From Tubulanus polymorphus (lineage: Eukaryota > Animalia > Nemertea), in contig NC_134030.1 in assembly GCF_964204645.1 (NCBI RefSeq), positions 9,327,222 to 9,391,221 of the forward strand: a stretch of DNA of 64,000 nt, read 5' to 3'. The position numbers and the translations under genes were made by a program. Below, piece after piece: positions 6,101-51,100 of this stretch; the stretch's first letter is position 1; each line of letters starts with the position of its first letter. The notes under the pieces are model-generated. The model made no database searches and was not told the origin of the DNA. It saw nothing but the letters and a program-made list of their open reading frames with translations.

Positions 6101-9100
6101 AAATAGCTCGAAATCAGGGAAAAGTCAATGAAATTGATGAGATTGCTAGATCACAGTTTCCATGTCTATGTCTTACAAATTTGACTGTGTTAATTGATTA
6201 AGTTCTTAGAAGATCAGTAAGGGAAAACAACGCGCATGTCAGGGAATAGTCAGGGAATCAGCAAGTCAAATAAAAGCCACTCTGAAAATATGTTTTTAGG
6301 CCAGCTGTATGCTTAGCTTTTTTGCCATGATACAAATTTGTGAGAATTTAAATGCTATGGTTTCCAGATAGCTTTTGCACTGAGCATATGTCCACAAGAA
6401 ATGATTTCATCGTATTTCTTGGTGTAATTTTAGAAATGGATGAACCCGTACACGGCGATGAAAAGGAAGGACCGAAAGATACATTAGCCGAAACATTTGA
6501 ACAAATACTAAGTCCCAATATCGATGTCGATAAAAATCTGGACGTCGATAAAATGCTCACTGAAGGTAAGTTATCGTGCCTGTCAAGTTTTGAGTAGGTA
6601 GATTAAATTACGAATATATTTAACACATTCGTGCCGCTGATTGAATCTTATTAGTAGTCAGCCATTTGATTGCGGAGTGGGCTGGTACGGTTATAGCTCT
6701 GGTTTAAGTCGTCGAGTTCGTTGCTACTGCGATCCCTCTCATTTGCTACTTAGAGTTATCTAATATTTGGCAACAGCAGTTCTTCAGAATTCACTAATGT
6801 GTATATAACATTGACTTGAGGTACTGTGTCTTTCTGGGTGCTAAATGTGTCAATTCCATCAAATCAGAACAGCAAACAGCTGATAAAAACCTGCTAGTGG
6901 AGTACTGCCTAATGCCCGATCATGGGGTAGCCTTATTGAATGATTTTGATGACATTTGGAATGACTGGTTGACTAGAAGCTTGTCAATTCGGGTTGATCT
7001 AGTTAACGTATCTAATATGTTTCTCGGTTGTTTCGTCTTACCGGTAGGATAGTACGCATTCATCGTTGAATTATTGATCGTTTCAGGATTTCAAGGATTA
7101 ACTCAGATCGACAGCAAAACCGTCGAGGATATCATCGGCGTTTTGAGTAATAACGACCACCGCCATCAAACGCCGACTGGTGCCGAAACTTCGCAGCCGG
7201 CTCCTACGCCGCCTCCGCCGCCAGCGAGTTCGGGCTTTCATCTTCCGCATCCGCTACCATCGATGGCCGGACCGTCTTCGTCCGCGATGCCGGGCCCGTC
7301 GGGTCCTCCCGGTCCCGGTGGAATGCCAGGCCCGACGCGGCCGCAACCGCCTACCAGTTTGAGCCCCTACAACCTGCCACCGCCGTCGCCTTATCACACT
7401 CCGGCTGAACTATCGAGGTACGTGTATCCGAATTAAGCCTCTCAGTGCGTCCACACCGCTGTGCGGTGTATTAATGGGTAATGAACTTTACTAGCTATAT
7501 CCAATTTTCGCTCCCAGAAGTCTGAAGAATGTTTTTCGACGGAACCTGATTTTTCAAAAGTATCGAGGTAATGGAGCCTCAAACTCACTGCCTGGGGCTT
7601 TGTACATTCCGTCCTCCCTCATTTAACTGGCACATGAATCCGTTTGTTTACTGGACATCCGTTCTTAGCTACCAAAAATATAGATTAGTTCTCATGTTCT
7701 TTCTACATTCCGTCAAATCAAAACAGCAAACAGCTGGTAAAGAAACTGCTAGCGGAGTACTTCCTAATGCGTTAGCCTTATCCATTGATTTTGATGATAT
7801 TAGGAATGACTGGCACATGAATGCCTTTCTTTACTGGACATCCATTTTTATTGACCAAAAACATGAATTAGTACTCTTCTTTCCGCAGCCCGCAATTCAG
7901 CCCGAATTTCCCCGAACCGATGACTCCGCCGATGTGGCAACAAGTCGAGGAAACCGAAACGGAAACTCTGTCATACAACAAACGTAACATAATGAAGTGG
8001 GAGAAAGATGAGCCGTTCGGCGACCAGGCGACGATATCGCCCGTTCTGTACGCCAATATCAATCATCCCGAGCTGAAAATCGAATATCCCGAATGGAGCG
8101 AACGAGCGAAACAAATCGCGAAAATATGGAGACGAGTTCCGACTGAACAAAGAGCGCCGTATCTGGTGAGTGTGGAAGATATTCTCGTATTATTGGTTTT
8201 TGGACTTGCTTTGTGAGACCCTTATTTTCGTTCTGCCTGTGTCTCTGTGTATGTGTCTCCGCGTGTAATGTGACTTTCAGCAACTAAGCTTTGTTGATAG
8301 TGGATCGATCTTGATGAAACTTGGGTACGATGTTAGTATGGGGGTCTAGTTATGCAGTGCAAAGAACGGACCCAGGGCGCCACCTAGTGGCAGATGTAGG
8401 CATTAAAAACTCAGTTTTCTCAGTGACATGACCTTGCTGATGACTTCATTACTGAGGAACGGGGTCAAATTTCTAAAAGTTGTCTTGAAAAAATTTAGCT
8501 ATTGGTCCTAGATACAACGTATCAAAAATGCAAAGCAAACTAAGGAATAGTAATATCGGAGTTCCAGATTCGCGCCTGAGCCCGAGAACCATTGTTGCCT
8601 GTGGTTGTTTATATCTCGCCTCTTCATCATCTCCCTTGTCTTAGATTTCACCGAGGACATTGCCTCAAATGAGCATAAACTTCAACCCGTACTTTCGACA
8701 TGTTTTCTTAGGCTAAAGCTCGTGAGAACAGGGCTAGCAACCGCATGCAGAAATCGCAGAAAGCCGCATGCGTCCAGGTCATGCCGCCGCCTCCACCACC
8801 GCCGAGGCAGAAAATGTCCGCCGACGAGCGTTTTCAACGCGAACAGAAAATGTTACGCGAACAAGAGCAAGAACGACAATGGAAACATTTCCAGGCGTTA
8901 CGACAACAACAGTTACAAGTCCAAATGCCTCTCGGCGAGCGCCTCAACAGTCCAGGTATGTCGAGTTCAAATCCGGTTCGATCAATGAATAACAGTGAAG
9001 CTGTGTGTAAAGGTCTGGGGCCAGTTGCTCAAAAGCTAATTAAAGATAACCGGCAGATAGATACCATAGAAGCGATGAACTTATAAAGTGTCACTATGTC

Positions 9101-12063
9101 AACTATCCATTTGTTAACTCTTACCAACTTTTGAGCAACCTGATGTATACAACTGTGAGAAAATCTGATTTGCAAGCCTGTGAATGAAAATTACAAGATG
9201 AGGTAGAGCTCAATCTTGGTACCATATTTGTTGGCTTGTATCTCGACCTATTTAAGCCTGTTCGGTTCAATAGCCGGAATAAGGTAGCGTGATGAACGTC
9301 GGCAATAATACGAAAACTTAGGCCAGTTTCCAACTTGAAAAATTCCCACTTAGGGACAGAAAAATATTTGAAAATGGGACTCAACACTTACTAACTCAAG
9401 CATTTGTACATGTCATACATACTGTGTCTGTTCACTTCTTCTGAGACCACTTACCTTTGATGATACTGAGGGTTACTGCATATCTATGATAGCAGTTGGC
9501 TGTCGAGCTTGCAATGTCTTCTCAGATACTTGATTTCATAGAGTGAAGATTTGGCAGCCTGAATTGTGTGTTATTAAGACATTTCTTCTGTCTTGCATCT
9601 TCACGATGCCACTAGTTGTAGTTAATGTGTATTCATTTCAACGACTCCCCGTAGAGACACTGCTAAACATTGGTGTTATACAATAATCAGCTTTTGACTA
9701 TTTTCAAATCAGTGCGATCTTGTATTTTGATATTTGACTGCTGTAGAAAGTACAATTTGGTGTTAGTTGATTAATCAGGTTTTTTGGTGATTTACAGGAA
9801 GTGTTGGTGCTGAAAACACGGGTGCTATTACCCCTGATGGTCAAACACCGACTTCTATATGCGGGACTGTTACGACGAGCTCCAGTCCTCCCATGGGAAC
9901 TAGTCCGAGCACTTGGAGCGAAGGCGGAGATTCGTTTACGATGGGTCCACCTCCGGCTGGTTCTACGACGCCGCGTCCACCGACGACGCAATCTTATGAC
10001 CCGTACGCGCAGGCGCCGTCGACGCCCAGACCCGATCCGCAGGGGCAGTTGGCACAACCTCCGCCACCCGAGAACGGCATTCGCCCGTCGATGGTCGGTC
10101 CGCGTATGATGCACCGACCGGAAGGATTCCCCGGCGCGGGCATGCCGCGACCGCCTACGCCCCAGGATCCGTATGCACGGCCACCGGGAACGCCTAGACC
10201 CGAACCGATCGGTCAACCGCGACATCCCGAAGAATCATTCCAGCGACCGCCGCACGGCGAAATGGGCGTGCGGCCGCCATTCGGAATGCGTGTACCTCCC
10301 GGTATGGGTCAACGCCCGCCGGGAGATCCGTTCCGCAATCGCGCGATGTCTGTTCCCGGCGAGCCTAACGTGGGTAACCAGTTTCCACCGGGGCATCCGC
10401 GTACGCCAGAAGCGTTCATGCATGGATCGCGCGAACAGATCGGCCAGATACCCGGCGCGACGCGGCCACCGTTTCCTCCGCGACCGCGAATGATGGGACT
10501 GCAACGATCGATATCCGACCCATACGGCCAACAAGTACGAACGCCGAGACCGTCCGATCCGTATGCCCAACAACCGATGACTCCACGACCGAGCGACATG
10601 TTTCCGCGTCCGCCGGTTTCGGAGCCGTGCAGCCCGGGCGGTCGCGCGCCTGGTGAACATTACGGTCCGCCACACGTTCATCAACAGTTTAACCAGCCCG
10701 GCGCCCCGCCGCCATTCCAAGACAATTTCAATCAGTCGCCGTCGACGCCGCATCCAGTGCCACCGGCGACGCCGACCGACCCGTACGCGAAACAACCTCA
10801 AACGCCGCGACCACCGCCGGATCACTTTAGTCCCACCGACCCGTACGCGCAACCTCCGCAAACGCCGCGTAGCGTCGACAGCTATTCGCAACCGGCGACG
10901 CCGCGTCCGACCGATCCGTACGCGCAGGCGCCACCGACCCCGCATTCTGATCCATTTTCCGGCGGTGGTTCCGAACAGGCCGGTGGATACAACGCCAATC
11001 TGCAGCATATAATCACAACGGAAAAACAACGTTTCATGGAAGAGGAAACGCCTCAAATGGTGAGTAGATTCTTCAGTCGTCGGTATAACAATGAAATATT
11101 ATCCAGTATTCAGGGTTACTTTAATCGATTAGTTTTTAGCTTAAGCTTAGTCAGGCTTGAGGGGTAAACTCAGCGTGCGCCATAAGCTGGAATTTTATAG
11201 GGGCTGCATTAACACATCGTGGCTGCTGAAGTTACTAAGCTTTCGATCCCCTTAAAAAGGTACAAAACAATTAAGCTTAATATTGGTGTAATCTTCTAGT
11301 TTTCACTATGTAACTCAATAGGCCTATATTTCAAAGCAATAGTCTCAGCAGAGAGTTCTTGCAAAAAGAAAATATACTAAGAAGAGGCTCATTAATGGGT
11401 GCTGAGTGAAATAGTAGATATAGTCTATTAAGAGTTATGGGGGGGACTTTTCAGAGGCTGGGGTGTCCCTATCACCTTGCCATTTAAAGAAAACATCTAT
11501 CACAATATTTTATATTTTCATACTTTCCTGGCTGATCTCTTCTCGGTATAGATATAAGCCGCAATCACGCAGAGACGAGTTGGCCCGGGCCAAATTGGCT
11601 CAGATCAGGCCCAAATAAAATTTGGCCCGCCTATTTAGGGAGAGCGTTCACACGCAAATCAATCTCTCAATACTAAACAATGCGTAAAGTAATCACTTCC
11701 GGAACCAGTTGCAATTTACATGCAAGAATTCGTCCTTGAATAAGAATTTGACCGGTGCTGAAATTTGGCATGGACCTGGTCAGTCATTTTAGGCACGAAC
11801 CAAAAACGCTCTCGGGTGAACGCGGCTACCATTTCATTCCTTTCAGTCATTGCCGGATTCAGAAATTGTTTCATTCGTCGTTTATGATTTTATTTCGGTG
11901 TATATCGCTTATAATCTTTTAAATTTGAGATATCGATTGTGTTTGCAGGATTCGCATTCCCGCGTGTTATCGCGGGTAAGTTTTATCATTGATTACTTTT
12001 TTGTTTTGTTTCGATGCATCGTGGCAGATTTTTAGAATGTTTGTTATCTTCCTTCGCGGGGTT

Positions 12064-27100: not shown

Positions 27101-30100
27101 GATCTGAAGATACTGATGTTTTCTTACATGTATATGTTTGTTTCGTATGATACGCACATGTGTGTGTTGTTATTGTATGTATGTAGGTCCGCGATACATG
27201 ATCCGTCCGCATTTAGACGGGATGGCGGCGCCTAACGCCCCGCGGTTACTCGGTCCGTTCCATCCACCAGGTAGGATGCCAGTATACAATGCATATGCAA
27301 AACCACCACCTTTTATGTGTTTATATATTATGTATCTATGTTTTCGGTACACTGTTTCGTTATGTACTTCACATTCTTTCGATAATTTCATCGTGCAAGG
27401 TTGTACTTCCTAATTATTTTAAAATCTCTTATGCTCTTTGTTGCGTAATTTATGATTTTTCCCATCTACGCCAGCCCCGCTGCATTGGCAATACGGTTTA
27501 TCCCTGAAAAAAACTCGCATTGGGTTTGTTATATAGCTGTTTATGCCTTGCACACATCAAGTTCTTGTATTGATTAAAGGTTTGCCCGCAATCGAGGGTT
27601 TCGTTAGCCACGACGCAGCAGGCTTTACGGTTCCCGAGAAAAAACCTAAGAAAAAACGTAAACGCAAAAAGAAAGAACTGATAGGTTCGTCGCCGTGATT
27701 GCCCTCTAGTGCTAGATTTTAGAACTAACGAACAGTCCTGTACGCGTATAGAGCACGTGTGCTACTTGTGACTTATGAATTTCGGTAGATGTACGTTTTT
27801 ACTAACGGATAGATTTTGATTTAATACGGCTGTTGCTGCTGCTACTGCTGCTGTGATAACTAACCTGGATGATTGTCATTAAATTCATAAACATGCTAGT
27901 TGAATACATCGAAAATCTTCTTTTCATCGGATAAACAATCCTTCGTGTGTATTTCTAATCTTCGTTTGTAGTTCTTCTATTTGCTTGCTCTCCGATCTTT
28001 ATCATAAGAAATCTTTTTCTTCGGATCCCCTGTATTACGTATTACATTTTTATCATGTCGGCATGACGCATGTTTTGTTTGAAAGCTGACCTGTTTTACA
28101 TCGTTTAACTCACATTATCAAACTAATGCATGCGTCCAGGGTGGCCACTTACCTGGAAAACCTGGAAAGCTCAGGGAATCATGAAAAATGTAGAAAAAAT
28201 TCAGGGAAAACTCAGGAAATATGACAAATTTTTCCAAAGACATGGGGAATTTGGATATGTTGTTGACCAGTCATTTCTTCACCAATACGTGATTCATAAA
28301 AAAAATGAATAAATTGTAACATTTCAAATTGAGAAATTCCTGGCAAAGAATTTCATCAAAGAATTCTGAGTTACAACCAGGAAAAAATCGGTTGGATTAA
28401 AAATTGGCTGAACGTGGCGACCCTGGCATTGCTAATAAATAACACATGCCACTTACCTTAATCTGTCAATTGATTTTCGTAAATTATGTACACTGATATT
28501 AGTTTGGTTGAATGATATGCTGTTTCTGCCATGAAGATGTCGTAAAATGTAATTCATAACGTTGTTTGCCCGTTTCAGGATTGTCACCGAGTTCCCAACC
28601 ACCATCGACGCCATCACCGCACAGTTCTGACGGCCAGCGCTCGCAACATAACCAACCGATGATGTCTCCCTTACCATCTCCGACCAGTTTGGCTGCGAAA
28701 GGCCATCAGCTCGGTTCGCATATGGTCGACGTTCCATCCACTGGACAATCCGTTCCTTTGCAAATGATACCTCGTCCGCCGTTGGAAGGATCCGAAAGTG
28801 TCGAGTCGGTAATGGTGCGACCGATGTCGGTTCACACGTCGACTTCGAGTCCGGCGTCAGTACACGGCGGAAAGTCGATCGAGGATAGTCACTCGCAAGG
28901 TTCTGGAAGTGAAACCTCGTCGACGCACGGTTCGCCTCGTATACATCATAGCGGAAAGACAGGGCCGCCATTCCCGCTCGAGGAAGACACTACCTCAGTG
29001 AAATCCAGTTCAGATGACACGCAGATTAACGATCCGGAACCGGATCAGATGGGTGATATTACTGATGGTAGCGGTGAAAGAAAGGTTGAAACTGTCGAAA
29101 AATCGGATACTGTAGGTGATTCCGGGAACTTGCCAGCACTTGCTGCTCAAGATCCTGCCGTGACGCATCCAGATAACAGTAGAGTAGCTGCAGCCTGTGA
29201 TTCCAAAGAAGATTCTGATACTCCCCTTGGCAGTAAGACACAAACACAAGGTGACTGTGGAACTCCACATGGTTGTGGTGAAACAACTGGCCAGCCAACC
29301 CAAGGGGATTGTGGAACTCCACATGGTTGTAGTGAAACAACTGGACAACCTTCACAAGGTGATTGTGGAACTCCACATGGCTGTGGTGAACCAACTGGTC
29401 AGCCAGCCCAAGGGGATTGTGGAACTCCACATGGATGTGGAGAGCCTACTGGACAAACTTCACAAGGTGACTGTGGAACTCCACATGGTTGTGGTGAACC
29501 AACTGGACAAACTTCACAAGGTGACTGTGGAACTCCACATGGTTGTGGTGAACCAACTGGCCAGCCGACACAAGGTGACTGTGGAACTCCACATGGTTGT
29601 GGTGAACCAACTGGTCAGCCAACTCAAGGTGACTGTGGAACTCCACATGGACGTGGTGAACCAACTGGTCAGCCGACACAAGGTGACTGTGGAACTCCAC
29701 ATGGATGTGGTGAACCAACTGGACAAATTTCACAAGGTGACTGTGGAACTCCACATGGTTGTGGTGAACCAACTGGACAAACTTCACAAGGTGACTGTGG
29801 AACTCCACATGGATGTGGTGAACCAACTGGACAAACTTCACAAGGTGACTGTGGAACTCCACATGGTTGTGGTGAACCAACTGGCCAGCCAACACAAGGT
29901 GACTGTGGAACTCCACATGGTTGTGGTGAACCAACTGGTCAGCCAACTCAAGGTGACTGTGGAACTCCACATGGCTGTGGTGAACCAACTGGTCAGCAAA
30001 CTCAAGGAGACTGTGGAACTCCACATGGATGTGGTGAACCAACTGGTCAGCCGACACAAGGTGACTGTGGAACTCCACATGGATGTGGTGAACCAACTGG

Positions 30101-33100
30101 ACAAACTTCACAAGGTGATTGTGGAACTCCACATGGTTGTGGTGAACCAACTGGTCAGCCAACTCAAGGTGACTGTGGAACTCCACATGGCTGTGGTGAA
30201 CCAACTGGTCAGCCAACTCAAGGAGACTGTGGAACTCCACATGGATGTGGTGAACCAACTGGTCAGCCGACACAAGGTGACTGTGGAACTCCACATGGAT
30301 GTGGTGAACCAACTGGTCAGCCAACTCAAGGTGACTGTGGAACTCCACATGGCTGCGGAGAGCCTACTGGACAACCTTCACAAGGTGATTGTGGAACTCC
30401 ACATGGCTGCGGAGAGCCTACTGGTCAGTCATCTCAAAGTGACTGTGGAACTCCACATGGATGTGGTGAACCCACTGGTCAGCAAACTCAAGGGGACTGT
30501 GGAACTCCGCATGGATGTGGAGAGCCTACTGGCCAAGAATCACATGAAAATGTTCCCTCAAGTAGTTGTGAACCGAATCCCATACAATCCCAAGACTTAG
30601 GTGAGTCAAGTGAAAAAAAGGGAGCTTCAGAAAGAACACCTTCAGCTAACCCCTCTACATCCAAGGCTTCTATGAGGCAGGATAAACTAATGGAAACAGA
30701 CGAGCCACATAAAACTGAAGGGATTTCCTCTATTTTAGATGTCGCTAGCAATGCAAGCCAACTACCCAGTAAGCAAGTTACGGAGGAAAGTCCTAACAGC
30801 GATAGTTCTCAGGCTACGCTTGTTGATCAGCCTATCAGCTCTGATGCGAATGATGTCCCATTGCCAACCGTGAAGACGGAGAAAGATGATTCGTTACTAG
30901 AAACTGGTGCTTGTAATATTAAACTTGAACCTGTTTCTACCACAGTCGCTGCGAGTTGTGGCCATTCGGTGCCAGTCATGCCAACTGGGAAAGTGATGTC
31001 TAACATCAAAGCAGAACCAGGGGAAGGTGGTAAGTATATTTTTACCCTATATCTTATTGTTTTCTGGTTATTTCAAACATCGGTTGTGATAGGCGTGCAT
31101 TGTATTTCAGGACAAACAACGCATGGACCATGTAGTGAAGAAGAAATGGAAGCTATTCGAAGTCAGAATGTCTTATTGAAACAATTATTAGCTATGCCTA
31201 ATCAAGAGATACCCGCAGGAATGCAATTACCACCAGGAGCTCTCCCGATGTCAACTACGACACCGCCACCACGCCCAAGTGGCACGCCGCCAGTTGCTAT
31301 GTCAATGGGTAATCTTGAAGGGCAGAATCTCCAACATTCGGTGCATATGCATCAACAAGTCCCGATATCTATGCCAGCTGGTATGCCGCCTGGAGGACCA
31401 GGAATGATGCCGCAGCATATGGGAATGCCACATCATCCCTCGAATATGCCTTTGCGACATCCGCAGATGCAGCCTATGCCACCGCCGTATCACGCGCACA
31501 TGGGTGGACAACCGCCGCAATCAATGGGCATGCCGCCAAGATCTCAGATGCAAATGAGCATGGGTCCGATGGGCCAGCACCCGGGTAATATGCCCCACCG
31601 TATGATGTACATGCATCAGTTACCTCCGCACATGCGTCATCCAAACCAAATGGAATTACGGCATCACATGGCGCAAATGGCGGCCCGACAGCCGATGCAC
31701 CATCCGGGGATGGGGCCTCCGCGTATGCACATGGGCATGCAAGGGCCGCCTCAGCAAATGATGCGCGGAATTCCGAGTCGGCCGAATCAACCGATGCCTC
31801 ACATGGGTCAAGTTCGAGCACCGACGAGTATTCCGCCGGTCGTATCGTCGAGCTCGCCGCAGCCTCAAGGGGCGATTAACTCGAACATGCCGCGTCGATC
31901 AACGCCTTCGCCGCACGCGATGGGTATGCAACACGGCTCGATGGGCCACATGATGATGTCTCCGACCGGACAGCCACCACGCGGAATGCCGCCCGGTTAC
32001 ATGCAAGGGCCGCCGACTAGTATGGCTCAACGACATTCACCGGTGAGCAGCGGTCAGAACCTTCCGCCGTCGACGTCTCACCCTCAGGCGGGGCCGCGAG
32101 GAATGCCTCGACCCATGAGGTACCCGCCGTCGAGTACACCGCCGGGAAACTCGCCGCCGGGGTTCCCGTTCATACGCGGGCAACCGCCAATCGCCCATGC
32201 GCACGCTCCTCGTCAGTCGTTGCCGCCGGGCCATCCGGGACATGGGCCTCCGTCGCGGCTACCGCCGTCTAGTCAATTCCAAACTCACATGGGCGACATG
32301 ATTCGTCTACCGCCTACAGGTCATCAGCCGATAAACCAAGGACATCCGCCGTCCAGTTCGCCTCAAATCGGAATCCCGCCGATCCGGATGCCCGAATCGA
32401 CATCACCTCAGAATCGAATGGGAATGATGCCCGCGGGCCTTACGTCGCCAATGGACCCGACCAAATCTCCGAGCGAACTGCATCCGGGGAAGATGTCGCC
32501 CATGCAGCAACAACAGCAGCAGCAACAACAACAACAACAACAGCAACAACAATCACCTCAAGGACTTCCTCGCGTGTCGATACCGATGGGTTTACCCGGG
32601 CAGACGACGCTGATGATGGTTCCGCGTCAGCCTAACCCGCAGCAACAAATCGGGCAACCGCAAACCGGTATGGGTATACCGAAAACGCCGCCGAACATGG
32701 GCGGTCTCAGTCCCGTGATATCGCCGCACGGAATGACGGCGATGATGCCACCCAGTCTACCGACACCGCCTAGTGGCGGACGCGTCGGTTTATCGCCTCA
32801 ACAGAGATTATCACGCCCGCCGTCACGAGTGGTATGTGTAAAAAACATTTCGGCAATTTTTTCTGGTTATAACTTGAAAATTAATAATGTAACGTTCACA
32901 TTTTTTTTTTACAGGAGGGAGAAGACGATCTGACGCCGGTTTCGTTGACGCCGGAACAACAGCGACAACTAGCGCTAATCGACAGCATGCCGCTGACGAT
33001 GGAGTTGGACATGTCGCCCGACGAATGGGCCGCGAAATCATCCGAGGAAAAGGAACGAATAATCGGTATGTGGAGACAGGGTAATGTTTAACTTTATCAT

Positions 33101-36100: not shown

Positions 36101-39100
36101 ATAATAGCGCCCTGAAATGGGATGCCAAATACCTTCTTCTCGATATTGTGATTAGTTGTCCGGGTTGCGACTTAACCTGGAAATCAGGGAAGTCAGGGAA
36201 TTTCTTTTCTTTAAGTGAAACTCAGGGAATGGTCAAAGAATTTTGTAAAAAAGTTTATAATGTCAGGGAAATTTGTTGAGATTGCTAAATCGCGCGTAAA
36301 ATCAAACAGTTTCCGTCTGTCTTATGTCTGCGGCTGTTTCCATCTATGTCTTTTATCTTTGACTGTGTCCCATGTCTTACGTCTTATGACTTTGTGAATT
36401 GATTGAATTTTGATCAGATCGGTCAAATCAGATCGAAACAACGTACATGTCGGGGAATAGTCTGGGAAAAAGCAAATCAGATAAAATAGCCACCCTGATG
36501 GACGTTTTTCTTGTGTTTTTTCGATAGCAAAACCTGTCAAACTGGAAGAAAAGAAAAAAGATGAGACATCCGAATTGGAACAACTTCTCATCAAGGTATA
36601 TATAGTAGTATACCGTTAAAACTGGCGTATAAGTCTACGCGACGTATAAGTCGAGGTTGATTTTTAGACCTACATTTCATGATTTTAGCATATATCCGGC
36701 TTATAAGTCGAGTCCCTTCTCTTAGAAGAATAATTACTGTATTGAATAGTTTGTTTTGATAACGATGTGCGCCTTCACGCATGCGGCCGCGCGTCAGCCT
36801 GATTGCTGCTGTGTGTTAATCAATAGACTGTTACACACACACTCAGGTATAATACACTACCATACAGTGATAGAGTAGTGTGAGTCACACGCTATATAGA
36901 GCCTAATGTATTAAGCGCTGCTATGAGCGCGCATATATGAATACATCGTTTTAAATGAAGCTATGTCAAAATGAAAGAAGTTTTTTTCATTAAATAACTT
37001 TATTTATCATGAATAATTATTCAAACTGTTATAGCAGTAAGAAGATGAACACTGTCTTTTTTGTCTGGTAGAATCAATATTTCTTGTGACCTGAAAATAC
37101 TTAGTAGAAAACTGTACTCGGCGTATAAGTCGAGGTCAATAATTTAGTGGTAAAATCAAGGGTTAAAAACTCGACTTATACGCCAGTTTTTACGGTAGTT
37201 GACTAACCGGTATTTGTTTTGTGGCACATTACATTTAGATAATTACCTGTGGGTCGAAATGAATTATTGAGCTCACGATTACTACTTTTTCTTCCTCAGG
37301 AAAAGGAGAACCTTGGCGCGGGTATTCTCGGCGACGAACTCGCCACGACGAAGAAGATCTCGCCGCTTATCTCGGCGTTCAGCAAGCCGCTTAAAGATAC
37401 GTCGTATCTCGAAAATCAGGTGTCGGTAACGTTGACGCTTTCGTCCGGCGCCGCCGAGGATATCAACGGTGTCCTGTCGGCCATTGCGAACTTGCTGAAA
37501 ATCACGATCCCGACGTCGTACGAAATCGATCGCAGCCCGACGCCGGATCCGATGAGCGATCCGTCGTCATTCATCATGGGACAAACGCCCAAACGTAGAT
37601 GTGAGTTTTCACCATGTTACCCGAATGATATGAAATCAAACCGTCGTTTGATAATGTACAGTTTTCATATGCCCTCTCCTATTCTGGAATAACCAGAATG
37701 CGCTCACTCAGTCGAGATTACCATTACTATGTCACCAGACACATCCGCTGTTTACTATGCCCACAAGTTGTCAGACCTTCGTTAGGTACCGACACTGGCC
37801 ACTGAGCGACTCTTACAACAGCAAAAATCAGAAGTTTCACAATTAGCTTATCGAAACAACAGCGCACACCTTATTGAGGTGTCTCACAAGCCCAGATTTG
37901 GTATTTCCGTCGAGTACTGTACCCTTTCCTATGGTTTTTGCCAATATTTTCTAAATTTGGATTTATCGCCAATGGTTTTTCTATACGACCCGGCCCTGCG
38001 GTATTGCATTTAGCCACCGGCGAAATCCGCCATCTTTTTTCTTGGCGTTCTCGCAGTAGAACGCGTTGGATTTTTTCGCCGTAAAAATCTGGGAATTAGG
38101 ATATTAGGGAGTTTTCACTCTCGTAACGGTGAGCCTGATTTCTTTTTTTCCGTAAGAATTTTATTTACAAATATAATTTGATTGAATTGAATTGAATTGT
38201 TTTGATTTGTAACAGGATAATTATGCCACCCCCTCCTAAGGGTCAGCATCGTGGCGGGGAGGGATGCGGGCATTTGTTTGGCGCCTGGGACAACCACGAT
38301 TCATGTGCGTCGTGCAGGCGCAAATCCGGTCAAATATGTGCAAGGAGCAATCCTTGTAATATTTGCGTCGTGTGGTCCGAGGACCTTTGGCTTCGGGCCG
38401 ATAAGGCTCTTAAACTAAGAGATCGTCGTCGAGTTAGCAGGGATTCGTCGGTTTCGGCCGATGTGCCAACCGACGTTTCTAATCCTGTTTCTTATCGTAA
38501 AGCGGAGCGGTCGCCGGTCGTTCAGGTACGATCGGCTTCCCAACTCCGTTCACCGGGGAGGAACGCTGGTTCACCGGCACCGGTCTCCGGTCATTCACCG
38601 GTCTCTGGTCGTTCACCGGTTCGGCCGGTTCGGCCGGTTCAGACTACATGTTCAGAACCGAGCGCGCGCCGCGGTAGTCGCGAACGGCCCGCACCGGTTC
38701 GGTCGGTACCGGTCCGGTCCGGGTCGGGCATCGGTCCGGTTCGGCCACCGGTCCGGTCCAGACGTCGTCCGGTTCAAACCATCCGGTACGGTCATCGTCT
38801 GATTCTGATCGTCGCTCCGGGGATAGAGCTCGCTCTCCCACTAGATTTAGACGCCGTGAGCGTAATAAACGAGCAAGATCTCCTTCTCGCAGATCAAGGT
38901 TTGATCGCGAGAGGGACTACGATCGTTATTGTCGGAAGTTTCGCCGTCGGTCTTCTCATCGTTCGTCGACGTCGGTTAGCGATGAAAGCAATTCTTCTAG
39001 TAGGTCGCGATCCCTTTCGAGGGACCGTCACCGAAATCGGCATGATCGTCGGGATACTGGAAAATACCTGACTCAGAAGGATTTCCATGTATTTGAGGAA

Positions 39101-42100
39101 AAAATTTTATCAACTTGTTATCTTCGTCGCAACAAGTCGCTGCAACTTCTACAACAGGTAAGCCTATTCCTGATTGTCCGGTTAGAAGTTCGCCAGCCCA
39201 CTCAGTTTTTCGGAATTCTGACTCTGAATTCCTGGATGCTGCGGTAGGGTCTGATTTCAATGAGGATCCGGTCCCAGAGGCGGCAATTCCTTCTGGGGTC
39301 GTTCCTGTCGCAAGCAATTGTGGGTTGCCCCAGACGATGGGGGCTTCCCTGGCTCGCAATGTATCTCCGTCCCGTTCAGTATTATACGAACCAGCGGGGG
39401 ACATGCCATTTAGAGCGATGATAAGTGAGTTCTTTGTCAAGCACGAGGCAACTCGCGCTAAGCCCACAGCAGCTCCTCTGGTCGGTGAGTCAATGGAAGC
39501 TTATCGCCCTCCGGACTCCGATCTTAACGTTTTACGGGAATCGTCAGCGGTTTCGAGAGAATGGGCTCGATTGGATACGCAATTATGGGGTGAATGTCGG
39601 CCTGGAACTTTTTCATTTCCCCCTCCAGAACGGGGTATGAAATCTGGGAAATATTTTAGTTCAACCGATCCACCTATAGGCGCATTTCGCTCGGCGTATT
39701 ACGCAACTCCAGGTGCTGTGGATCACAGTCATAACTGCCTGGATGCTGATTATACTTTGATCAGCCCGGATACTGTTACAGCACAGTCGGGTATTCGTTT
39801 GCCTAAGTCCGGTTTGGTGGCCATGACGTCAATCCTGGACAATCTTACCAGGGTTGGTTCGTTTCAAGATATGGCACTTAAGGTGTTGACGGGTGAGCTT
39901 CGCGAGACTCACGCCGCCGTTCATGCGGGCTCCGACCCAGAGTCAGTTGCCCTAAAACTGGAGGGAATGGACCGGATTATCCAATCTTTGGCTCGGTCTG
40001 TTTCGCATGTAATTCCGTTGTCGGTTCGGGGTCAGGCTAATCTGGTGTTAGCCTCCCGTCAGTCAGTGATGGACTCCAGTGCCAAAACTCGTCTACCGGA
40101 TATGGTGTCCAATGCTTTGCTGAGAGCCCCATTGGGGACGTCTTCACGTCTCTACTCCGGTTGGTGCGCTCCGGTTTCCGCAGAGCTGAGGAAGATTCGG
40201 GAGGTTCAGGCCAAGTCCAACCCCCGAACTCCGTGGAAAAAGCGTTCTGGTCCGACGCCGGCGGCGCAAGGTTCGGCACGGACGCAAACAGGACCATCTC
40301 AAACTTCAGCGCTTTCTCAGGCGGCTTCGGATGCCGGTTGGAGAACTAGCGCGCAACTTCAACAATCGTGTCAAGCCTCGTCCGGTCGTAACAGTTCCGG
40401 TTCGTATCGAGGCAAGGGGAAGGCTCCAAAAAGGGGCTCTTCCTTTCGGAAAAACTCGAAATGAATTCTTGGGACCAGTGGGAGGTTGTCTGCAGCAGGC
40501 AGCAACCCACTGGTCCGACCTCTTTGGAGACGGTTGGCCCTCCCGGGTCGTCTCTCGGGGCTACCGTCTCCGTTTCCTAAGGCGACCGCGCCTGATGAGG
40601 TCACCTCCCGACATGCGGCCAAAACCAGGTCAGGAGGCCTTAATCTCTCCGGCTCTCAAGGAACTGGCAGAGAAGGGAGCGATAGAACCAGTTTGCAACG
40701 AAACTTCTCCCGGCTGGTTTTCTCGAATATTCATGGTACCAAAGGCCACAGGGGGTCAACGGACAGTGATAGATCTGTCATCCCTCAATCGGCACCTAGA
40801 CATTCCAAGGTTCCGGATGACCAAGCCCAAGGACGTGATTCAAGGGCTCTGTCCGGGTCAATGGGCGGCTTCATTGGACCTGAAAGACGCTTACTTTCAG
40901 GTTCCAATTCACCCAAAATCTCGGCGATTTCTCAGGATAAAGTGGAAAGGCTGCCAGTTCCAATTCAGGTCTCTTCCATTTGGCCTCAGTACGGCCCCGT
41001 GGGTTTTCACCAAGTTGGTCAAGTCAGTTCAGAAGGTACTTCAGTCAAGGGGTGTTCGACTGTTCGTTTACCTCGACGACTGGTTAATAGTCGCGAATTC
41101 GGCTCAGGAATGTCGGGAGGCAATGACCTCAGTCTTGGACTTAGTCCATCAGCTAGGGTTCCGCGTAAACAGGGAAAAATCTCAGTTGACGCCGGCCCAA
41201 CAGTTCACTTATCTCGGCATGGACTTCGATCTCCGAATCGGCAAAGTCTTTCCGTCTATGGTTCGAGTGGCCAAACTTCAAGAAGCTGTAGCGGGAGTGT
41301 CCACAACCCCGAGAACAGCTCGTTACTGGTCACGGCTTCTAGGCTCCATCAGCTCCATGGGTATGGTGGTGCCCTTAGGCCGCCTCAGAAGCAGGCGCTT
41401 GCAACAATATTGGAAGGTCTTCTGGTCTCAGTCGAAGGGCAACTGGGAGGCCTTGATTCCCGTACCTCCAACCGATCTAAGTCCGGATCTTCAGTGGTGG
41501 GCGGCCACTACGAATCTTCGGCTCGGGGTGTCACTAGCCCCGTTAGAGGCTCCAGTTCGTGTATTCACGGATGCCAGTCACCAAGGTTGGGGGGCACATC
41601 TGGAGAACCGAGTCAAAGCCGGGAAATGGTCTCGCTACGAGGCCACCAACCACATAAATTTCCTAGAAATGCTGGCCGTGTGGAAGGCCCTGAAGTTCTT
41701 TCACAGGAGAGTGGAGGGCCACCACGTTTGGTTAGCCACAGACAATTCAACAGTGAGGGCTTACCTTCAGAACCAAGGGGGCACTCACTCAGAAACCCTC
41801 ACAGGTCTGTCGGCCAAAATTCTTCTTTGGTGCCAGACAAAGGGCGTGTCCCTGACTGTGGCACATTTAGCAGGGAAAAGGAACGTGATGGCCGATGCTC
41901 TGTCTCGTCGAGGTCAGGCTATTGCGACAGAATGGGTTCTCCACCAAGAAGTAGCCGATCGGGTTCGGGGCATTTTTGGCAATCCGCTGCTGGATCTGTT
42001 TGCCACCCGGTTCAATCGGAGGTGTCCTCTGTTTGTGTCCCCGTTTCCAGACGCGGAAGCGTGGGGGGTCGATGCCTTCTCTCTGGACTGGTCGGGGATG

Positions 42101-45100
42101 CATGCGTATGCGTTCCCGCCCACACCAGTCCTGCCGCGCTTACTGGATCAAATAGAGAGATCAGTCAATTGCAACATAGTTCTGGTAGCACCATGTTGGC
42201 CGGCTCAGAAATGGTTCCTACCACTTCTCAACCTACTGTGCGACAACCCCAGGATTCTTCCGAATTTCCCATCGCTTCTGTCTCAGGGGATCTTTCGGCA
42301 TCATCCAAACAGCCAGTGGTTAAATCTGCTCGCCTGGCCATTGTCCAGCGATCCTTGTCAGCTTCAGGCTTTTCAGAACAGGCTGCCTCCTTTATCGCAG
42401 GATCTAAGCGGCCATCAACAAGTACCATTTACGATGCCAAATGGAGTCATTTTGCGGATTGGTGTGCTGCAGGGGAAATTGATCCATGCTCACCCTCTGT
42501 AGCTCAATTGGCAGATTTTTTACTGCACCTATTTGTAGCAAAAGGTTTACAGGTCATAAGTATTAAAGGTTACCGCTCCGCGATTTCTCATACATTGCGT
42601 GCTTCTGGATGGCCAAATGTAGCAGGGGATCATCGGATATCCCAGCTGGTTGCTGGGTTTTCTATTTCCCGGCCTCGGGTAACAAGGACAGTTCCACCAT
42701 GGGATCTGTCTGTAATTTTGAAGAAGTTAATGGAGGCTCCATTTGAACCTCTTTCGGCAGCGTCTTTTGCAAATTTGTCAAAAAAGACTGTATTTTTGCT
42801 GTTCTTGGCTTGCTCGGCCCGTCGCTCTGAGATTCATGCGCTTTCAGTCCGACAAGGTCACATTGTCTTTGGGCCAGCGAATGAATTTGTTTCGCTGCGG
42901 CCTGCTTTGGAATTTTTGGCAAAGAACCAACGACCAGGCTCGGTTGGGCGTCAATGGCGAATTGAAGCCCTAAAACATCGAGTGGAACCGGGCATCCCGG
43001 ACAGGACTTTATGTCCTGTGCGGGCCTTGTGTTTCTATTTAGATCGCTCTGCTTCACGGAGGGGTTCACGGGAGCGGTTATTTATTCCGCTGCTGGATCA
43101 CCTAAAGGGTGATATTTCGCGGGACACAGTAGCCCGATGGGTCTTTTCAATGATCAAGGACATTTTATTGAAGGAGAATCTTTCCTCGGAGGTAGTCGTT
43201 TCTCATCAAGTGAGGTCTATGGCTACTTCCTGCGCAGCCTTTTCGGGTGCTCCGTTGGAGGAAGTCTGTCGGGCCGCCTTTTGGAATTCACCGTCGACAT
43301 TCACGTCATTTTATTTACGGGATGTTTAAGGCCAGTTAGGCTCATTAGCTTCACTTGGTCCTGTTGTCATGGCTCAAGGTGTCCGTTCTTTCCGATCGGA
43401 CCCTTTAGTGTAGAATATTTATGTAGCATTATCAGGATCACAGGGGGTGTATCCTTGTACATAGTTTGGGCTCATATCTGCAAGTATTAATTTCGCAAAA
43501 TTCTGGGGGGGGGCCCCTGAGCTGGACGGACTCACTGTGGCCAACCGGTCTTCCCTGTGCTACAGTGCTCCATTCCGTGCTTGGGTAAGTGCTCTCTTTT
43601 TCCCTCTTACCTTGCATTTGAGCGGTGGTTTTTCTATCTACCTTTCCCACCATCCTTGTGCTAGGCTAGTCTAGCAAAAACCATAGGAAAGGGTACAGTA
43701 CTCGACGGAAATATTACAATTTTTGGAACTAAAATTTGTATTTCCGAGTAGTACTTACCCTTTCCTATGGTGGGAATCCCGCCCACCTGCCCCGCATAGC
43801 TGTTTTTTTTGGTCTGCTATGACGAAAAAAGATGGCGGATTTCGCCGGTGGCTAAATGCAATACCGCAGGGCCGGGTCGTATAGAAAAACCATTGGCGAT
43901 AAATCCAAATTTAGAAAATATTGGCAAAAACCATAGGAAAGGGTAAGTACTACTCGGAAATACAAATTTTAGTTCCAAAAATTGTAATTTTTCTGTGCAA
44001 GGGAGTCGGGTCGTAATGCCTGCCAGAGAGAAGAAGTGTTAAGCTTTCCAAGCATTTAACCCCTTAATGATTTTTGGCTGATACCTACAATACGTCTATT
44101 CTCTTAGGGTTTTGGACGTATATGTGTTCATGTCAACACCCATCACCCGAGGGTTGCGAGCATAACTTGTAGTTGCACGTCCTCATTGGTTGTTTCGTTT
44201 GCCTGACATCTGATAGATATGTTGCTAGGGTCTTCATTCAAAACAACCATGGTACTACCGGGTGGGCAGAACTTTTACAAGTGAAAAAAATTTGAAATTT
44301 TGTGCAATTAATTGAAACAATGGAATCAAGAAACGATCGAAACCTTTGAGGGGTTATACGAACCACTTTTTCCCGTTATTTCAGACAAAGAGGAAGCGAT
44401 CAACATTCACAACCTGATCAAAGCGAAGCACAAGTCGTGTCTGAACTGCGAGGTCATCGTTTTGAACGCGGGCATTCGTCGAAAGATCGCCGAGATGGTG
44501 TTCCTCACACGCGAAGAGCAGCTCGAGTTCGACGAGGACGAAGTCGTGTTTTGCAGCACGAATTGCTACAATCTCTACGCGATGGCTCGCATCGCGAAAC
44601 GCGAACCTCCCAAGGTGCGTAATCGTCGACGTCTGACCGACCGTTTTTATTTAAAGGGAAAAACCGAAATGAAAGTATTTCGAAATAACGAATGAAAGTA
44701 TGAATGAGCAGGGACAGGTCTAGGATTCTTAGGAGGAGGTGCACCTGAAAATTGGAATAGGCACTTAATTTGAAAAGGGCATATATGACAATGTGAGGGC
44801 TGCTTTTAAAATTGGTGTGGGCTTCTGGTGGCCCTCCCACGGAAATGTTGAACAAAAGGCTTTTCTAGCCTTCATCACAACCCATTTGGATTTATTTTTT
44901 GTCATTTTGAAAATTGTCTTTGCACAAAAAGGTTTTCATACTTTTGGAGGGCACATTCGAATTTTGAAGGGCGTGGACTAGTTTACCCGGTCCACCCCTG
45001 AATCCACCCTTGAAGAGAGAGCAAGCTGTATACAAATTTGGGTCCCGGTTTATGTTTTATGTATCCATCTTGTCAATCGGGGATTATAGGTGCAAGTTCG

Positions 45101-48100: not shown

Positions 48101-51100
48101 CACAACTTTCTGACTATACAGCGACCATACTTCGTAAGGACGAAAGCTAAAACCGTATGATCTTAATTTCCAGACTTCTCAACATCGACATCGATAAATG
48201 GGTGCATTTAAATTGCGTGTTGTGGTCGTACGAGGTTTACGAGACTCTGAACGGCGCGTTGATGAACACCGAAACATCGTTCAAGGCGGCGCCGTCGATA
48301 ATCTGCACGGTCTGCGGTAAAAACGGCGCGACGTTAAACTGCTTCAAGCTGCGCTGTCCGAACATGTATCACGTCATGTGCGCGAAGAAAGTCAGCTGCG
48401 TTTTCTATAAAGATAAGGTGATTACCGCTGCAAGACGTGTTTAATGCCATTCTCGTTTGAATCTCACCGGTCCATGTTGGGCAGGATTAATAAATGAATG
48501 ACTATTAAGATTGCACGTGTAATATAGTTAGAAATTGTTTGTACTGCTTTGTTAAGAATCAAGTTAAATTTGAATTGCACAATTTTAATCTTCAATTTAT
48601 TTTCAATTTTAATTCTTACCCCATTCATCTAATTTCTCGTGAATCATTTCACTGTATTTAATCGCGACGTTTCAGACGCTATTCTGCCCAGTGCACGCGC
48701 TGAAGACCAGCATGGACGGCGAGCTGCCCGATCTGAAGGTCTTCCGCAAAGTCTATGTGAATCGCGACGAAAACAAACAGCTCGCCAGCGTCATTCATCA
48801 GGAGGATAAGAACTACATCATTCGAATCGGCGCGCTGGTCTTCCACTCGATCGGGCAACTGCTTCCGCACCAACTCATGACGGGACGTTATCACAACAAG
48901 TGGTTCATATATCCAGTAAGTGCTGCCATCTATTTCCGCTTACACTTTTAAACGATAAAGATGATTAGACCATATGTTCCTGAAAAGAGTTGCTCTTGCA
49001 GTCTAAAAGGTTTCAAAGATAGGCTGTATCTGGTTATTGATTAAATGAGTTACAGGTCTTGGGCCTGTTTTGAAGACATGTTTTAACTTTAACCTCAGTG
49101 AAATAGTCTATAATAAGTTGAAGTCCATAGTCATGTTTGATTCAGGACCCAGTTTGGTTTGTTATCTAGGATTGGAATTTAAATGTAGTTTATTTCCAGT
49201 TATTTCCAATTAGTTGCACAGTCATGGCACCAGTCAAAGACCATCTTAGGTCTATAGCCAATCTAGGTAACAACTTAAGACCAGATTTAAGATCATTTTG
49301 GCTCTTGTAAGCCATGACTGTGCAACTGGCCGCAGCAAATTAAAATCCCTTGTTGATATATTTTGGCGGCTCTGTTTCTTGCTCGATTATCAATGATCAT
49401 TACCTGTACAATTGACATAATATGTTCGTTCTATTAACAGATCGGCTACAAGACGTCGCGTTTCTACTGGAGCATGCGTTACTTGCACAAACGATGTCGC
49501 TACATTTGCCGCATCGAGGAGTTCGACGCGCGGCCGAAATTCTTCGTCGTCGTCGCCGAGGACGGCCACGACGACCTGGAGCTCAGCGATGACACGCCGA
49601 AGGGCGTGTGGAGCTCGATACTGGAAGCGATCGAGCGTAAACGTCGCGAGGCGTTGATGGTTCGAATGTTCCCGCATTTTTTGTCCGGCGAGGATCTATT
49701 CGGATTAACAGAACCGGCCATTCTCAGGGTCATTGAATCGGTGAGTGAACTTTTTTTCATTTATTTCGCTATTATAAGTTTCGATGTGGCTCCGGTTACA
49801 GAGTGCGATACCTCCAGTCATGTAGTACAGTTAGCGCATGCGCAATACAGTAGAATTCTGACTTGCAATGTTGGGATTCGAAACCAAACGAAAAAGTAGT
49901 AGAATGCTTTACCCACTGAGCCACAGCACACAACTGGAAGCTGGATGAGTTAATTTGTATAAAGCCTCACCTAACCCTAACCCTATTCCTTCGCGCATGC
50001 ACGTATGTAGATATAGTGCAGATTCCTCCGTAACCGTAGCCAGTTTGTATAAGTTTATCTCTTAACTAAAAAGTACAATACAAGAAAACAATCATCAGAT
50101 ACAATAGAAAAAGTTAAATAAAGTACTTCTACATTGTAAGCGTAGTAAAGAAATGGGACCCCAAGGGGGTATACTTTTTATAGAAAGCCTAATGCCTTTT
50201 TCGCACTTGTTGCCTGGTTTTTGGTTTGCGATCTGTACCTGATTTAGGACTCAGCAATGCTACTGCAGCTATATGGGATTCCGCTTGTGGCCGGCAAGTG
50301 CAGTTACTTCAATTGTTTCAAAATTTTGATAGAAATCGAACAGACTTTACTCTTCGAGTAGATCAGTTGTCGATGAAAATTAAGAATAAACTTAAAAGGC
50401 TTTTGATATAAACAAATAAAAACCCACAGTAGATGTGTAGAAAAGTAAATTTTTATTTGTCAACTCTACACTGAGATTCATATCAGTTCACTATAATCAG
50501 GCTTTTGATGGTTGTTTGATTTAATACATTTGATTAAGTCATGATTTAGTCGTGATTTACTACGTATTCATATTATATTCAGCAAAAACTAGTTAATTAT
50601 GATTCATATGAGGGTAATGATTGATATTATCATTAATGATGGTGCCATTTCATAATAGAATTGGAGCTTAAATCGCTTTATTTTTTCAAATTGAAATAGA
50701 AAATAAAGACATAGGTCTAACCAATAAAGAAGTTACCAATAGCGAATTGCCAGGTAATTCAGAAAATACCGAACCCTCGAGAATATATAGATTGTAGCCA
50801 CTGATAAAGATATAGTTTTTCCGCCAATGCGATGAATGTTATTTTTGGTGAGATAGAAGGGTGCAATATACATACATCTCGTTTGCGCGCGGTAGGCTCG
50901 GTTCATGGTTCCTACCACACCGGTTGATAGGGGAAAACTTGGGAATTTCAATATTATATTGCCCGGTTTGAAAATTTTTGGAATTCGATACATTTTCCTC
51001 TTTTCTAGGAAATATTTACGGTTCATTTTAGCGTAGTTCTGAGACGTGAATTTTTACGAAGGCCTTATTTCCATTTTTGAATAATTGCGAAAATCACCTA

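Follow-up and report, generated by a model that had tools for sequence, protein, structure and literature searches.

The window analysed here is a stretch of 64,000 nucleotides (nt) from the nemertean Tubulanus polymorphus (assembly GCF_964204645.1, contig NC_134030.1, positions 9,327,222 to 9,391,221 of the forward strand), and all coordinates below count from its first letter. On the plus strand it carries a gene of the KMT2C/D group, the enzymes which mark and activate enhancers in all animals. In the middle of this gene there is an array of 24 units, each encoding 18 residues with cysteine and histidine, to which an earlier note on this DNA had drawn attention from the letters alone. The array is part of the KMT2C/D mRNA, and the differences between its units suggest that the peptide itself is kept by selection. 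The domain-bearing features of the gene, and the array within it, are as follows.

7920-8216, plus strand, HMG-box exon of the same gene (PF00505, below the curated cut-off)
29244-30539, plus strand, tandem array of 24 x 54 nt, that is, 24 x 18 residues, with consensus TQGDCGTPHGCGEPTGQP
48157-48444, plus strand, exon of the extended PHD finger (PF13832, E = 3.5e-12)
49441-49899, plus strand, adjacent FYRN and FYRC (PF05964, PF05965)
56184-57569, plus strand, SET and post-SET exons with the stop codon (PF00856; best PDB matches KMT2D/KMT2C)

By its sequence, the host gene is a KMT2C/D (MLL3/4, Trr-type) histone H3 lysine 4 methyltransferase. The SET exon (56184-56870, PF00856) matches PDB chains of KMT2D (expectation value E = 2.4e-25) and KMT2C (2.4e-22) ahead of KMT2B (6e-15) and KMT2A (about 2e-14), and the post-SET end with the stop codon is found at 57569. 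Besides this SET/post-SET part nearest to KMT2C/D, another feature of the group is present, namely adjacent FYRN (49441-49521, PF05964, E = 4e-6) and FYRC (49474-49899, PF05965, E = 1.4e-18) preceded by an extended PHD finger. The HMG box at 7920-8216 has E = 3.9e-4 for PF00505 and scores 21.2 bits against a cut-off of 25.4 bits, the exon holding part of the box. Along the window and on one strand the order is HMG box, array exon, extended PHD finger, FYRN/FYRC, SET and post-SET; the N-terminal PHD finger clusters of the group would be located upstream of the window. FYRN and SET occur together at one further locus in this genome, which is on the same contig but in another place and in reverse orientation, and the gene is therefore taken from sequence as its sole KMT2C/D orthologue. 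By comparison with other KMT2C/D, the full-length protein probably has several thousand residues.

Tandem Repeats Finder places one array at 29243-30532, where 23.9 copies of period 54 follow each other without indels, at 89% matches and with a score of 1838. Division from 29244 into successive stretches of 18 codons yields 24 units, of which 21 differ in DNA sequence and 13 in peptide sequence, in the frame of the 1455-codon open frame 28566-32933. The 432-residue translation contains 47 Cys and 24 His. Residues 4-10 (D, C, G, T, P, H, G) are identical in 24 of 24 units, each unit has one T-P, and the second Cys is missing only once, being replaced by Arg in unit 8. The cysteines are spaced as C-x5-C within units and C-x11-C between units, with no CxC, CxxC or CC. 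Variation is confined to 19 of the 54 columns of the unit, 12 of them at codon position 3, six at position 1 and one at position 2. The near-perfect in-frame array, the Cys, His and T-P counts and the invariance of CGTPHG had all been described in the earlier note, and each of them was recovered here. The borders are sharp, no decayed unit or proto-unit being found in the flanks, and a search of the 268-Mb assembly for a second array showed it to be single copy, the weaker matches at protein level being unrelated simple repeats.

The exons around the array were delimited with contigs of the public run X2, which is RNA by its behaviour and provides evidence at the level of short-read contigs.

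27187-27270, plus strand, upstream exon spliced to the array exon (X2 contig end at 27238-27267; donor CCACCAG/GTAGGA)
28579-30600, plus strand, array exon of 2022 nt, phase 1 at both ends (X2 RNA contigs)
30601-30738, plus strand, intron of 138 nt, in frame and stop-free (GT..AG joint in X2, depth 46)
30739-31029, plus strand, short exon 3' of the array exon (X2 contig)
31030-31110, plus strand, intron of 81 nt, in frame and stop-free (GT..AG joint in X2)
31111-32831, plus strand, low-complexity exon rich in Met, His, Pro and Gln (translation and X2 contigs)

Three exact GT..AG joints are present in X2 (30601-30738, 31030-31110 and 32832-32913), and the depth inside the intron 30601-30738 is near zero. 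On the 5' side, a 2.4-kb contig has an upstream part which aligns with 27238-27267 at the end of exon 27187-27270. The contig from this exon runs via 28579 to 29272 (contig part 28576-29272) and so enters the array, where it ends because the repeated words break it; the acceptor at 28579 is also crossed by an unspliced contig of low depth. On the 3' side, a second contig, which starts at 30443 in unit 23, takes in unit 24, the remainder of the exon and two further exons. Between them an interior contig, 29374-29477, carries unit-specific variants at a depth of 62, against 28-46 in the flanks; within the array the contigs of this run are collapsed, and rare forms are lost from them. No joint that skips the array or leaves from inside it was seen among the X2 contigs, so that splicing out of the array, which had been named as a way in which the proposal could fail, is not what the RNA contigs contain. 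The array is part of the KMT2C/D mRNA, and with its units head to tail and in frame within one exon it is a coding tandem peptide repeat of the disordered region. The open frame 28566-32933 carries the array in frame, but it is not one exon: it mimics one through the two stop-free introns 30601-30738 and 31030-31110, which are removed in RNA, so that about 73 codons are noncoding. As a separate observation, contigs of run X3 break at 28875, 31540 and 31956, where a foreign sequence beginning GGTTCGTCCATCGATC recurs, and one X3 contig joins 30737 to the reverse strand of the exon near 19.7 kb; these breaks and this joint probably arose at library junctions and have no biological meaning.

Selection on the peptide can be read from the variation between units. 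Each variant state was counted once, for which 25-30% silent states are expected at transition/transversion ratios of 1-5. In frame 1, the frame of the gene, there are 18 silent and 11 replacement states (62% silent, P = 2e-5 to 3e-4), the other two plus frames give silent to replacement counts of 5:24 and 3:26, and none of the open minus frames compared for a silent excess was better than frame 1. By the Nei-Gojobori method over all unit pairs, the proportions of silent (pS) and replacement (pN) differences are 0.365 and 0.045, with a ratio of replacement to silent substitution rates (dN/dS) of 0.09, and dN/dS in the other open frame, frame 2, is 2.7; these pairwise ratios are descriptive as unit pairs are not independent, a problem of which the once-per-state count, still clear, is free. 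The constraint is concentrated in the 16-residue core QGDCGTPHGCGEPTGQ, with pN/pS of 0.036 at a pS of 0.33, and the two linker residues of the unit have 0.56. The suggestion that unit differences fall mainly on silent sites and point to constraint on the protein is therefore upheld, since the silent excess is found in frame 1 alone. A dN/dS of about 1 with no bias of frame had been named as a sign against the proposal; among the plus frames tested, dN/dS is well below 1 in one frame only. We hold with good confidence that the array is genuine, transcribed and in frame, and that it is kept by selection at the level of the peptide.

The alternative which survives best is that the array is a neutral coding minisatellite, recently expanded and tolerated in a disordered region as long as the frame is kept, its peptide having no function of its own. 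The pattern of turnover speaks for it in part. Three pairs of units are identical, and blocks of two to three units recur (units 5-7 with 10-13, and 14-16 with 18-20), which indicates recent unequal exchange; units in the centre of the array have been homogenised, and divergence is greatest at its edges. Such a pattern is typical of this kind of exchange, by which the array grew and is still being reshuffled, one to three units at a time. The sharp borders with no decayed units, the predicted disorder and the failure to find relatives in the libraries searched would also fit a young neutral repeat. Against these stands the silent fraction, 62% where neutrality predicts 25-30% (P <= 3e-4), and the core pN/pS of 0.036 is reached at a pS which places the units far from young. 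Moreover, the single-nucleotide polymorphism density of the flanks is roughly 0.4%, to be set against an array pS of about 0.3-0.4, and an old subfamily of units (4, 21, 22 and 24) is marked by three linked silent changes, GGT GAA CCA to GGA GAG CCT. We consider neutrality improbable, though it deserves more weight than any other alternative.

Another explanation would place the role of the array in splicing. The motif CAAG/GTGAYTGTGG (the slash marking the exon border) occurs in 18 of 24 units, and CAAG/GTGAY in each unit might serve as an in-frame alternative 5' splice site to the downstream acceptor, by which the array would tune the protein length or be spliced out. These sites are in phase 1, as are the real donors at 30600 and 31029, and hence splicing from them would stay in frame. 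Yet no unit-internal joint is found in the X2 RNA contigs, which do drop rare forms; the contig that comes from the upstream exon extends beyond the first candidate donor by 22 nt, and RNA also contains the interior of the array and its final two units. In addition, position +5 of the motif is C and not G, and the T of its GT is a silent site varying like other Gly third positions (19 T, 3 G and 2 A). Use as splice donors is thus not supported by the RNA contigs as the main role of the array, and such a ladder of donors seems unlikely.

Less likely still is an element acting in DNA or RNA, with the peptide as its by-product. Each unit contains a near-invariant dyad, TGTGGA-AC-TCCACA (6+6), at 29256-29272 and the equivalent places. 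The 14-mer of this dyad has two copies elsewhere in the 268-Mb genome, about the chance number, and is not enriched. On this explanation the dyad would be bound by a protein or would form a structure, and what favours it is that columns 13-29 of the unit (TGTGGAACTCCACATGG) are invariant save for one base in one unit, with five consecutive silent positions included. However, the clustering of invariant silent sites is weakly unusual at most (P = 0.04 to 0.25), the 14-mer is as rare elsewhere as chance would have it, a hairpin with a 2-nt loop is unstable, and 12 other silent positions vary freely where replacement positions do not.

That the array is an assembly artefact, or lies outside the gene, is hardly credible: tandem arrays are often misassembled and the raw reads here are shorter than the whole 1.3 kb, but DNA contigs and raw reads cover the array at a depth like that of the flanks, and X2 RNA contigs enter it from exonic sequence on both sides. 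The DNA contigs are those of run X1, which is DNA by its behaviour as its contigs cross introns, and the raw reads are 150-nt Illumina DNA reads of run X5, from a separate sample and study. In X5 the array has a depth of about 11x and its flanks one of about 10x, from which the number of units follows as about right. An assembly artefact, for which the absence of spanning reads had been named as the sign, is thus contradicted by independent reads. The same runs show that the odd residues of some units are polymorphic. At 29331 (unit 2), where the assembly has AGT for Ser, X1-X3 contigs carry G, giving Gly, and X5 reads are mixed; at 29728 (unit 9), where the assembly has ATT for Ile, 7 of 12 X5 reads carry C, giving Thr, the contig runs having no depth at this position. 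In both cases the alternative allele restores the usual residue.

Relatives of the array were sought widely. The exon query 28578-31250, comprising the array and flanks, was compared by phmmer with 1.84 billion representative proteins and gave 50 matches at E <= 1e-3, the best at 4e-23; those inspected are unrelated low-complexity repeats, none of which reaches the flanks. With the downstream exon as query (31113-32831), a word search gave no match. For the array itself, no Pfam family appears at E <= 1, PDB sequences give no match, and among ESM Atlas features there is no match above 0.9, with low recognition. No similarity of the unit to KMT2C/D proteins was detected in the libraries searched, and a search of the literature for such a module in KMT2C/D found none. 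The view that human and fly KMT2C/D lack the module agrees with its absence from the other proteins reached (the 1.84 billion representatives, Pfam, PDB and the genome itself), with human and fly KMT2C/D probably among them.

The array is predicted to be disordered: an AlphaFold2 model of 12 units, which is metal-free, has a predicted local distance difference test (pLDDT) score of 40 and no secondary structure. The exons beside it are poor in Cys and rich in Met, His, Pro and Gln. With 47 Cys in its 432 residues against one or two in each neighbouring exon, the array is a Cys island in a low-complexity region typical of coactivators. The exon 31111-32831, for its part, has 69 Met and 35 His in 573 residues (12% Met, 6% His) and a run of 19 Gln, and forms a sulfur-rich low-complexity domain adjoining the Cys array.

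The best explanation as a whole, to which we give a probability of roughly 0.55, is that the array is a selected tandem peptide in the disordered middle of KMT2C/D, for which metal or redox chemistry is proposed as the most likely mode of action. Each unit offers a candidate ligand set of Asp4, Cys5, His9, Cys11 and Glu13 on a flexible backbone of Gly, Pro, Thr and Gln, so that the array may act as a multivalent chain in which 24 weak Cys2-His(+acid) sites follow one another. The disordered region would become more compact or cross-linked on binding of Zn2+ or Cu+, or on reversible oxidation of the thiols, and this in turn would change the self-association of the coactivator or the access of partners. 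The invariant T-P of each unit might add control by proline-directed kinases. On the mechanism itself we are more reserved. That the array acts as a chain of weak metal or redox ligand sites modulating KMT2C/D, as its composition suggests in view of how Cys, His, Asp and Glu are known to behave as ligands, is a tentative proposal; and that it constitutes a new metal- or redox-responsive module, whose 24 Cys2-His(+Asp/Glu) sites would couple self-association, partner binding or stability of KMT2C/D to nuclear Zn/Cu or to the oxidative state, is more doubtful. To our knowledge, a direct chemical input into enhancer activation has not been described for any COMPASS-like complex.

Several considerations weigh against this explanation. 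C-x3-H-x-C, with three ligands, appears to match no known metal site, and as the nucleus is reducing, disulfide switching would need oxidative stress. The apparent age and conservation rest on comparison of units, in pairs that are not independent, within one genome. Purifying selection would mean that changes are harmful, which does not by itself tell the role of the peptide. At the RNA level, short-read contigs cannot place all 24 units in one molecule, and minor isoforms are possible.

Two known classes of metal-binding protein were considered and rejected. The earlier note had thought of a metallothionein-like module; the Cys content of 10.9% (47 of 432) against 20-30% in metallothioneins, the lack of CxC, CxxC and CC, and the lack of any family profile at E <= 1 in Pfam led us to drop that comparison as a classification. 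Metallothioneins do resemble the array in containing Cys, in being unstructured without metal and in sometimes having expanded by tandem duplication, but the array is one part of a much larger nuclear protein and has C-x5-C/C-x11-C spacing. A zinc finger or zinc knuckle was rejected as each unit has three Cys/His and not four and there is no match in Pfam or PDB; the low pLDDT of 40 comes from a metal-free model, and folding induced by metal is possible.

Closer likenesses are found among disordered repeats. The disordered regions of vertebrate KMT2D contain short Pro/Glu-rich tandem repeats and poly-Gln tracts, which like the array are lineage-restricted, in frame and in a non-catalytic disordered part of the same enzyme family, but they are short and Cys-free, whereas two Cys and one His are found among the 18 residues of the present unit. 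The carboxy-terminal domain of RNA polymerase II, (YSPTSPS)n, is likewise a disordered part of a nuclear enzyme, in this case a tail, in which a nearly identical unit is repeated many times under purifying selection; it has Ser/Thr-Pro in every unit and acts through multivalency. It shares no homology with the array, differs in composition with no Cys or His, and is universal in eukaryotes, while the array is seen in one genome. The octarepeat of the prion protein, (PHGGGWGQ)n, in which the His of each unit binds Cu2+/Zn2+, is Gly-rich and disordered, with one P-H-G per unit and G-Q at the unit end, and is the nearest analogue for a mechanism with one weak metal site per unit. Its unit, however, has 8 residues and not 18, lacks Cys and contains Trp, and the protein is extracellular and anchored by glycosylphosphatidylinositol; no homology is detectable. 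In yeast Pbp1/ataxin-2, a Met-rich low-complexity domain is a redox sensor, in which oxidation of sulfur alters self-association. This may serve as a working analogy, the exon beside the array being itself 12% Met, with the difference that the chemistry there is that of Met and in the array would be that of Cys.

The disordered centres of KMT2C/D are thought to act through multivalent, condensate-like interactions. Judged from its sequence, the array is a selected tandem peptide repeat in such a region, with an unprecedented Cys/His unit in a central chromatin enzyme; the centre of KMT2C/D here has gained a large block of identical Cys/His peptides which selection has preserved and for which no relative was detected. 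If metal binding or oxidation sensing is indeed its function, the array would show how a lineage wires a chemical signal into enhancer control. If it is neither, it would still be a clean natural case in which selection at the peptide level can be read from the silent variation within one array alone. The unit is in any case a simple and testable peptide of 18 residues.

Two further observations concern other parts of the gene. An intron of KMT2C/D contains, at 38202-43329 on the plus strand and in the same orientation as the gene, retrotransposon-like open reading frames with a reverse transcriptase (PF00078, E = 5e-23) and RNase H, whose overlapping frames suggest that the element is broken or frameshifted. 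An upstream exon, at 9893-11167 on the plus strand, carries about eight degenerate copies of DPYAQxPxTPRP with a T-P site in each, and thus holds a second, older-looking repeat of the disordered region of KMT2C/D.

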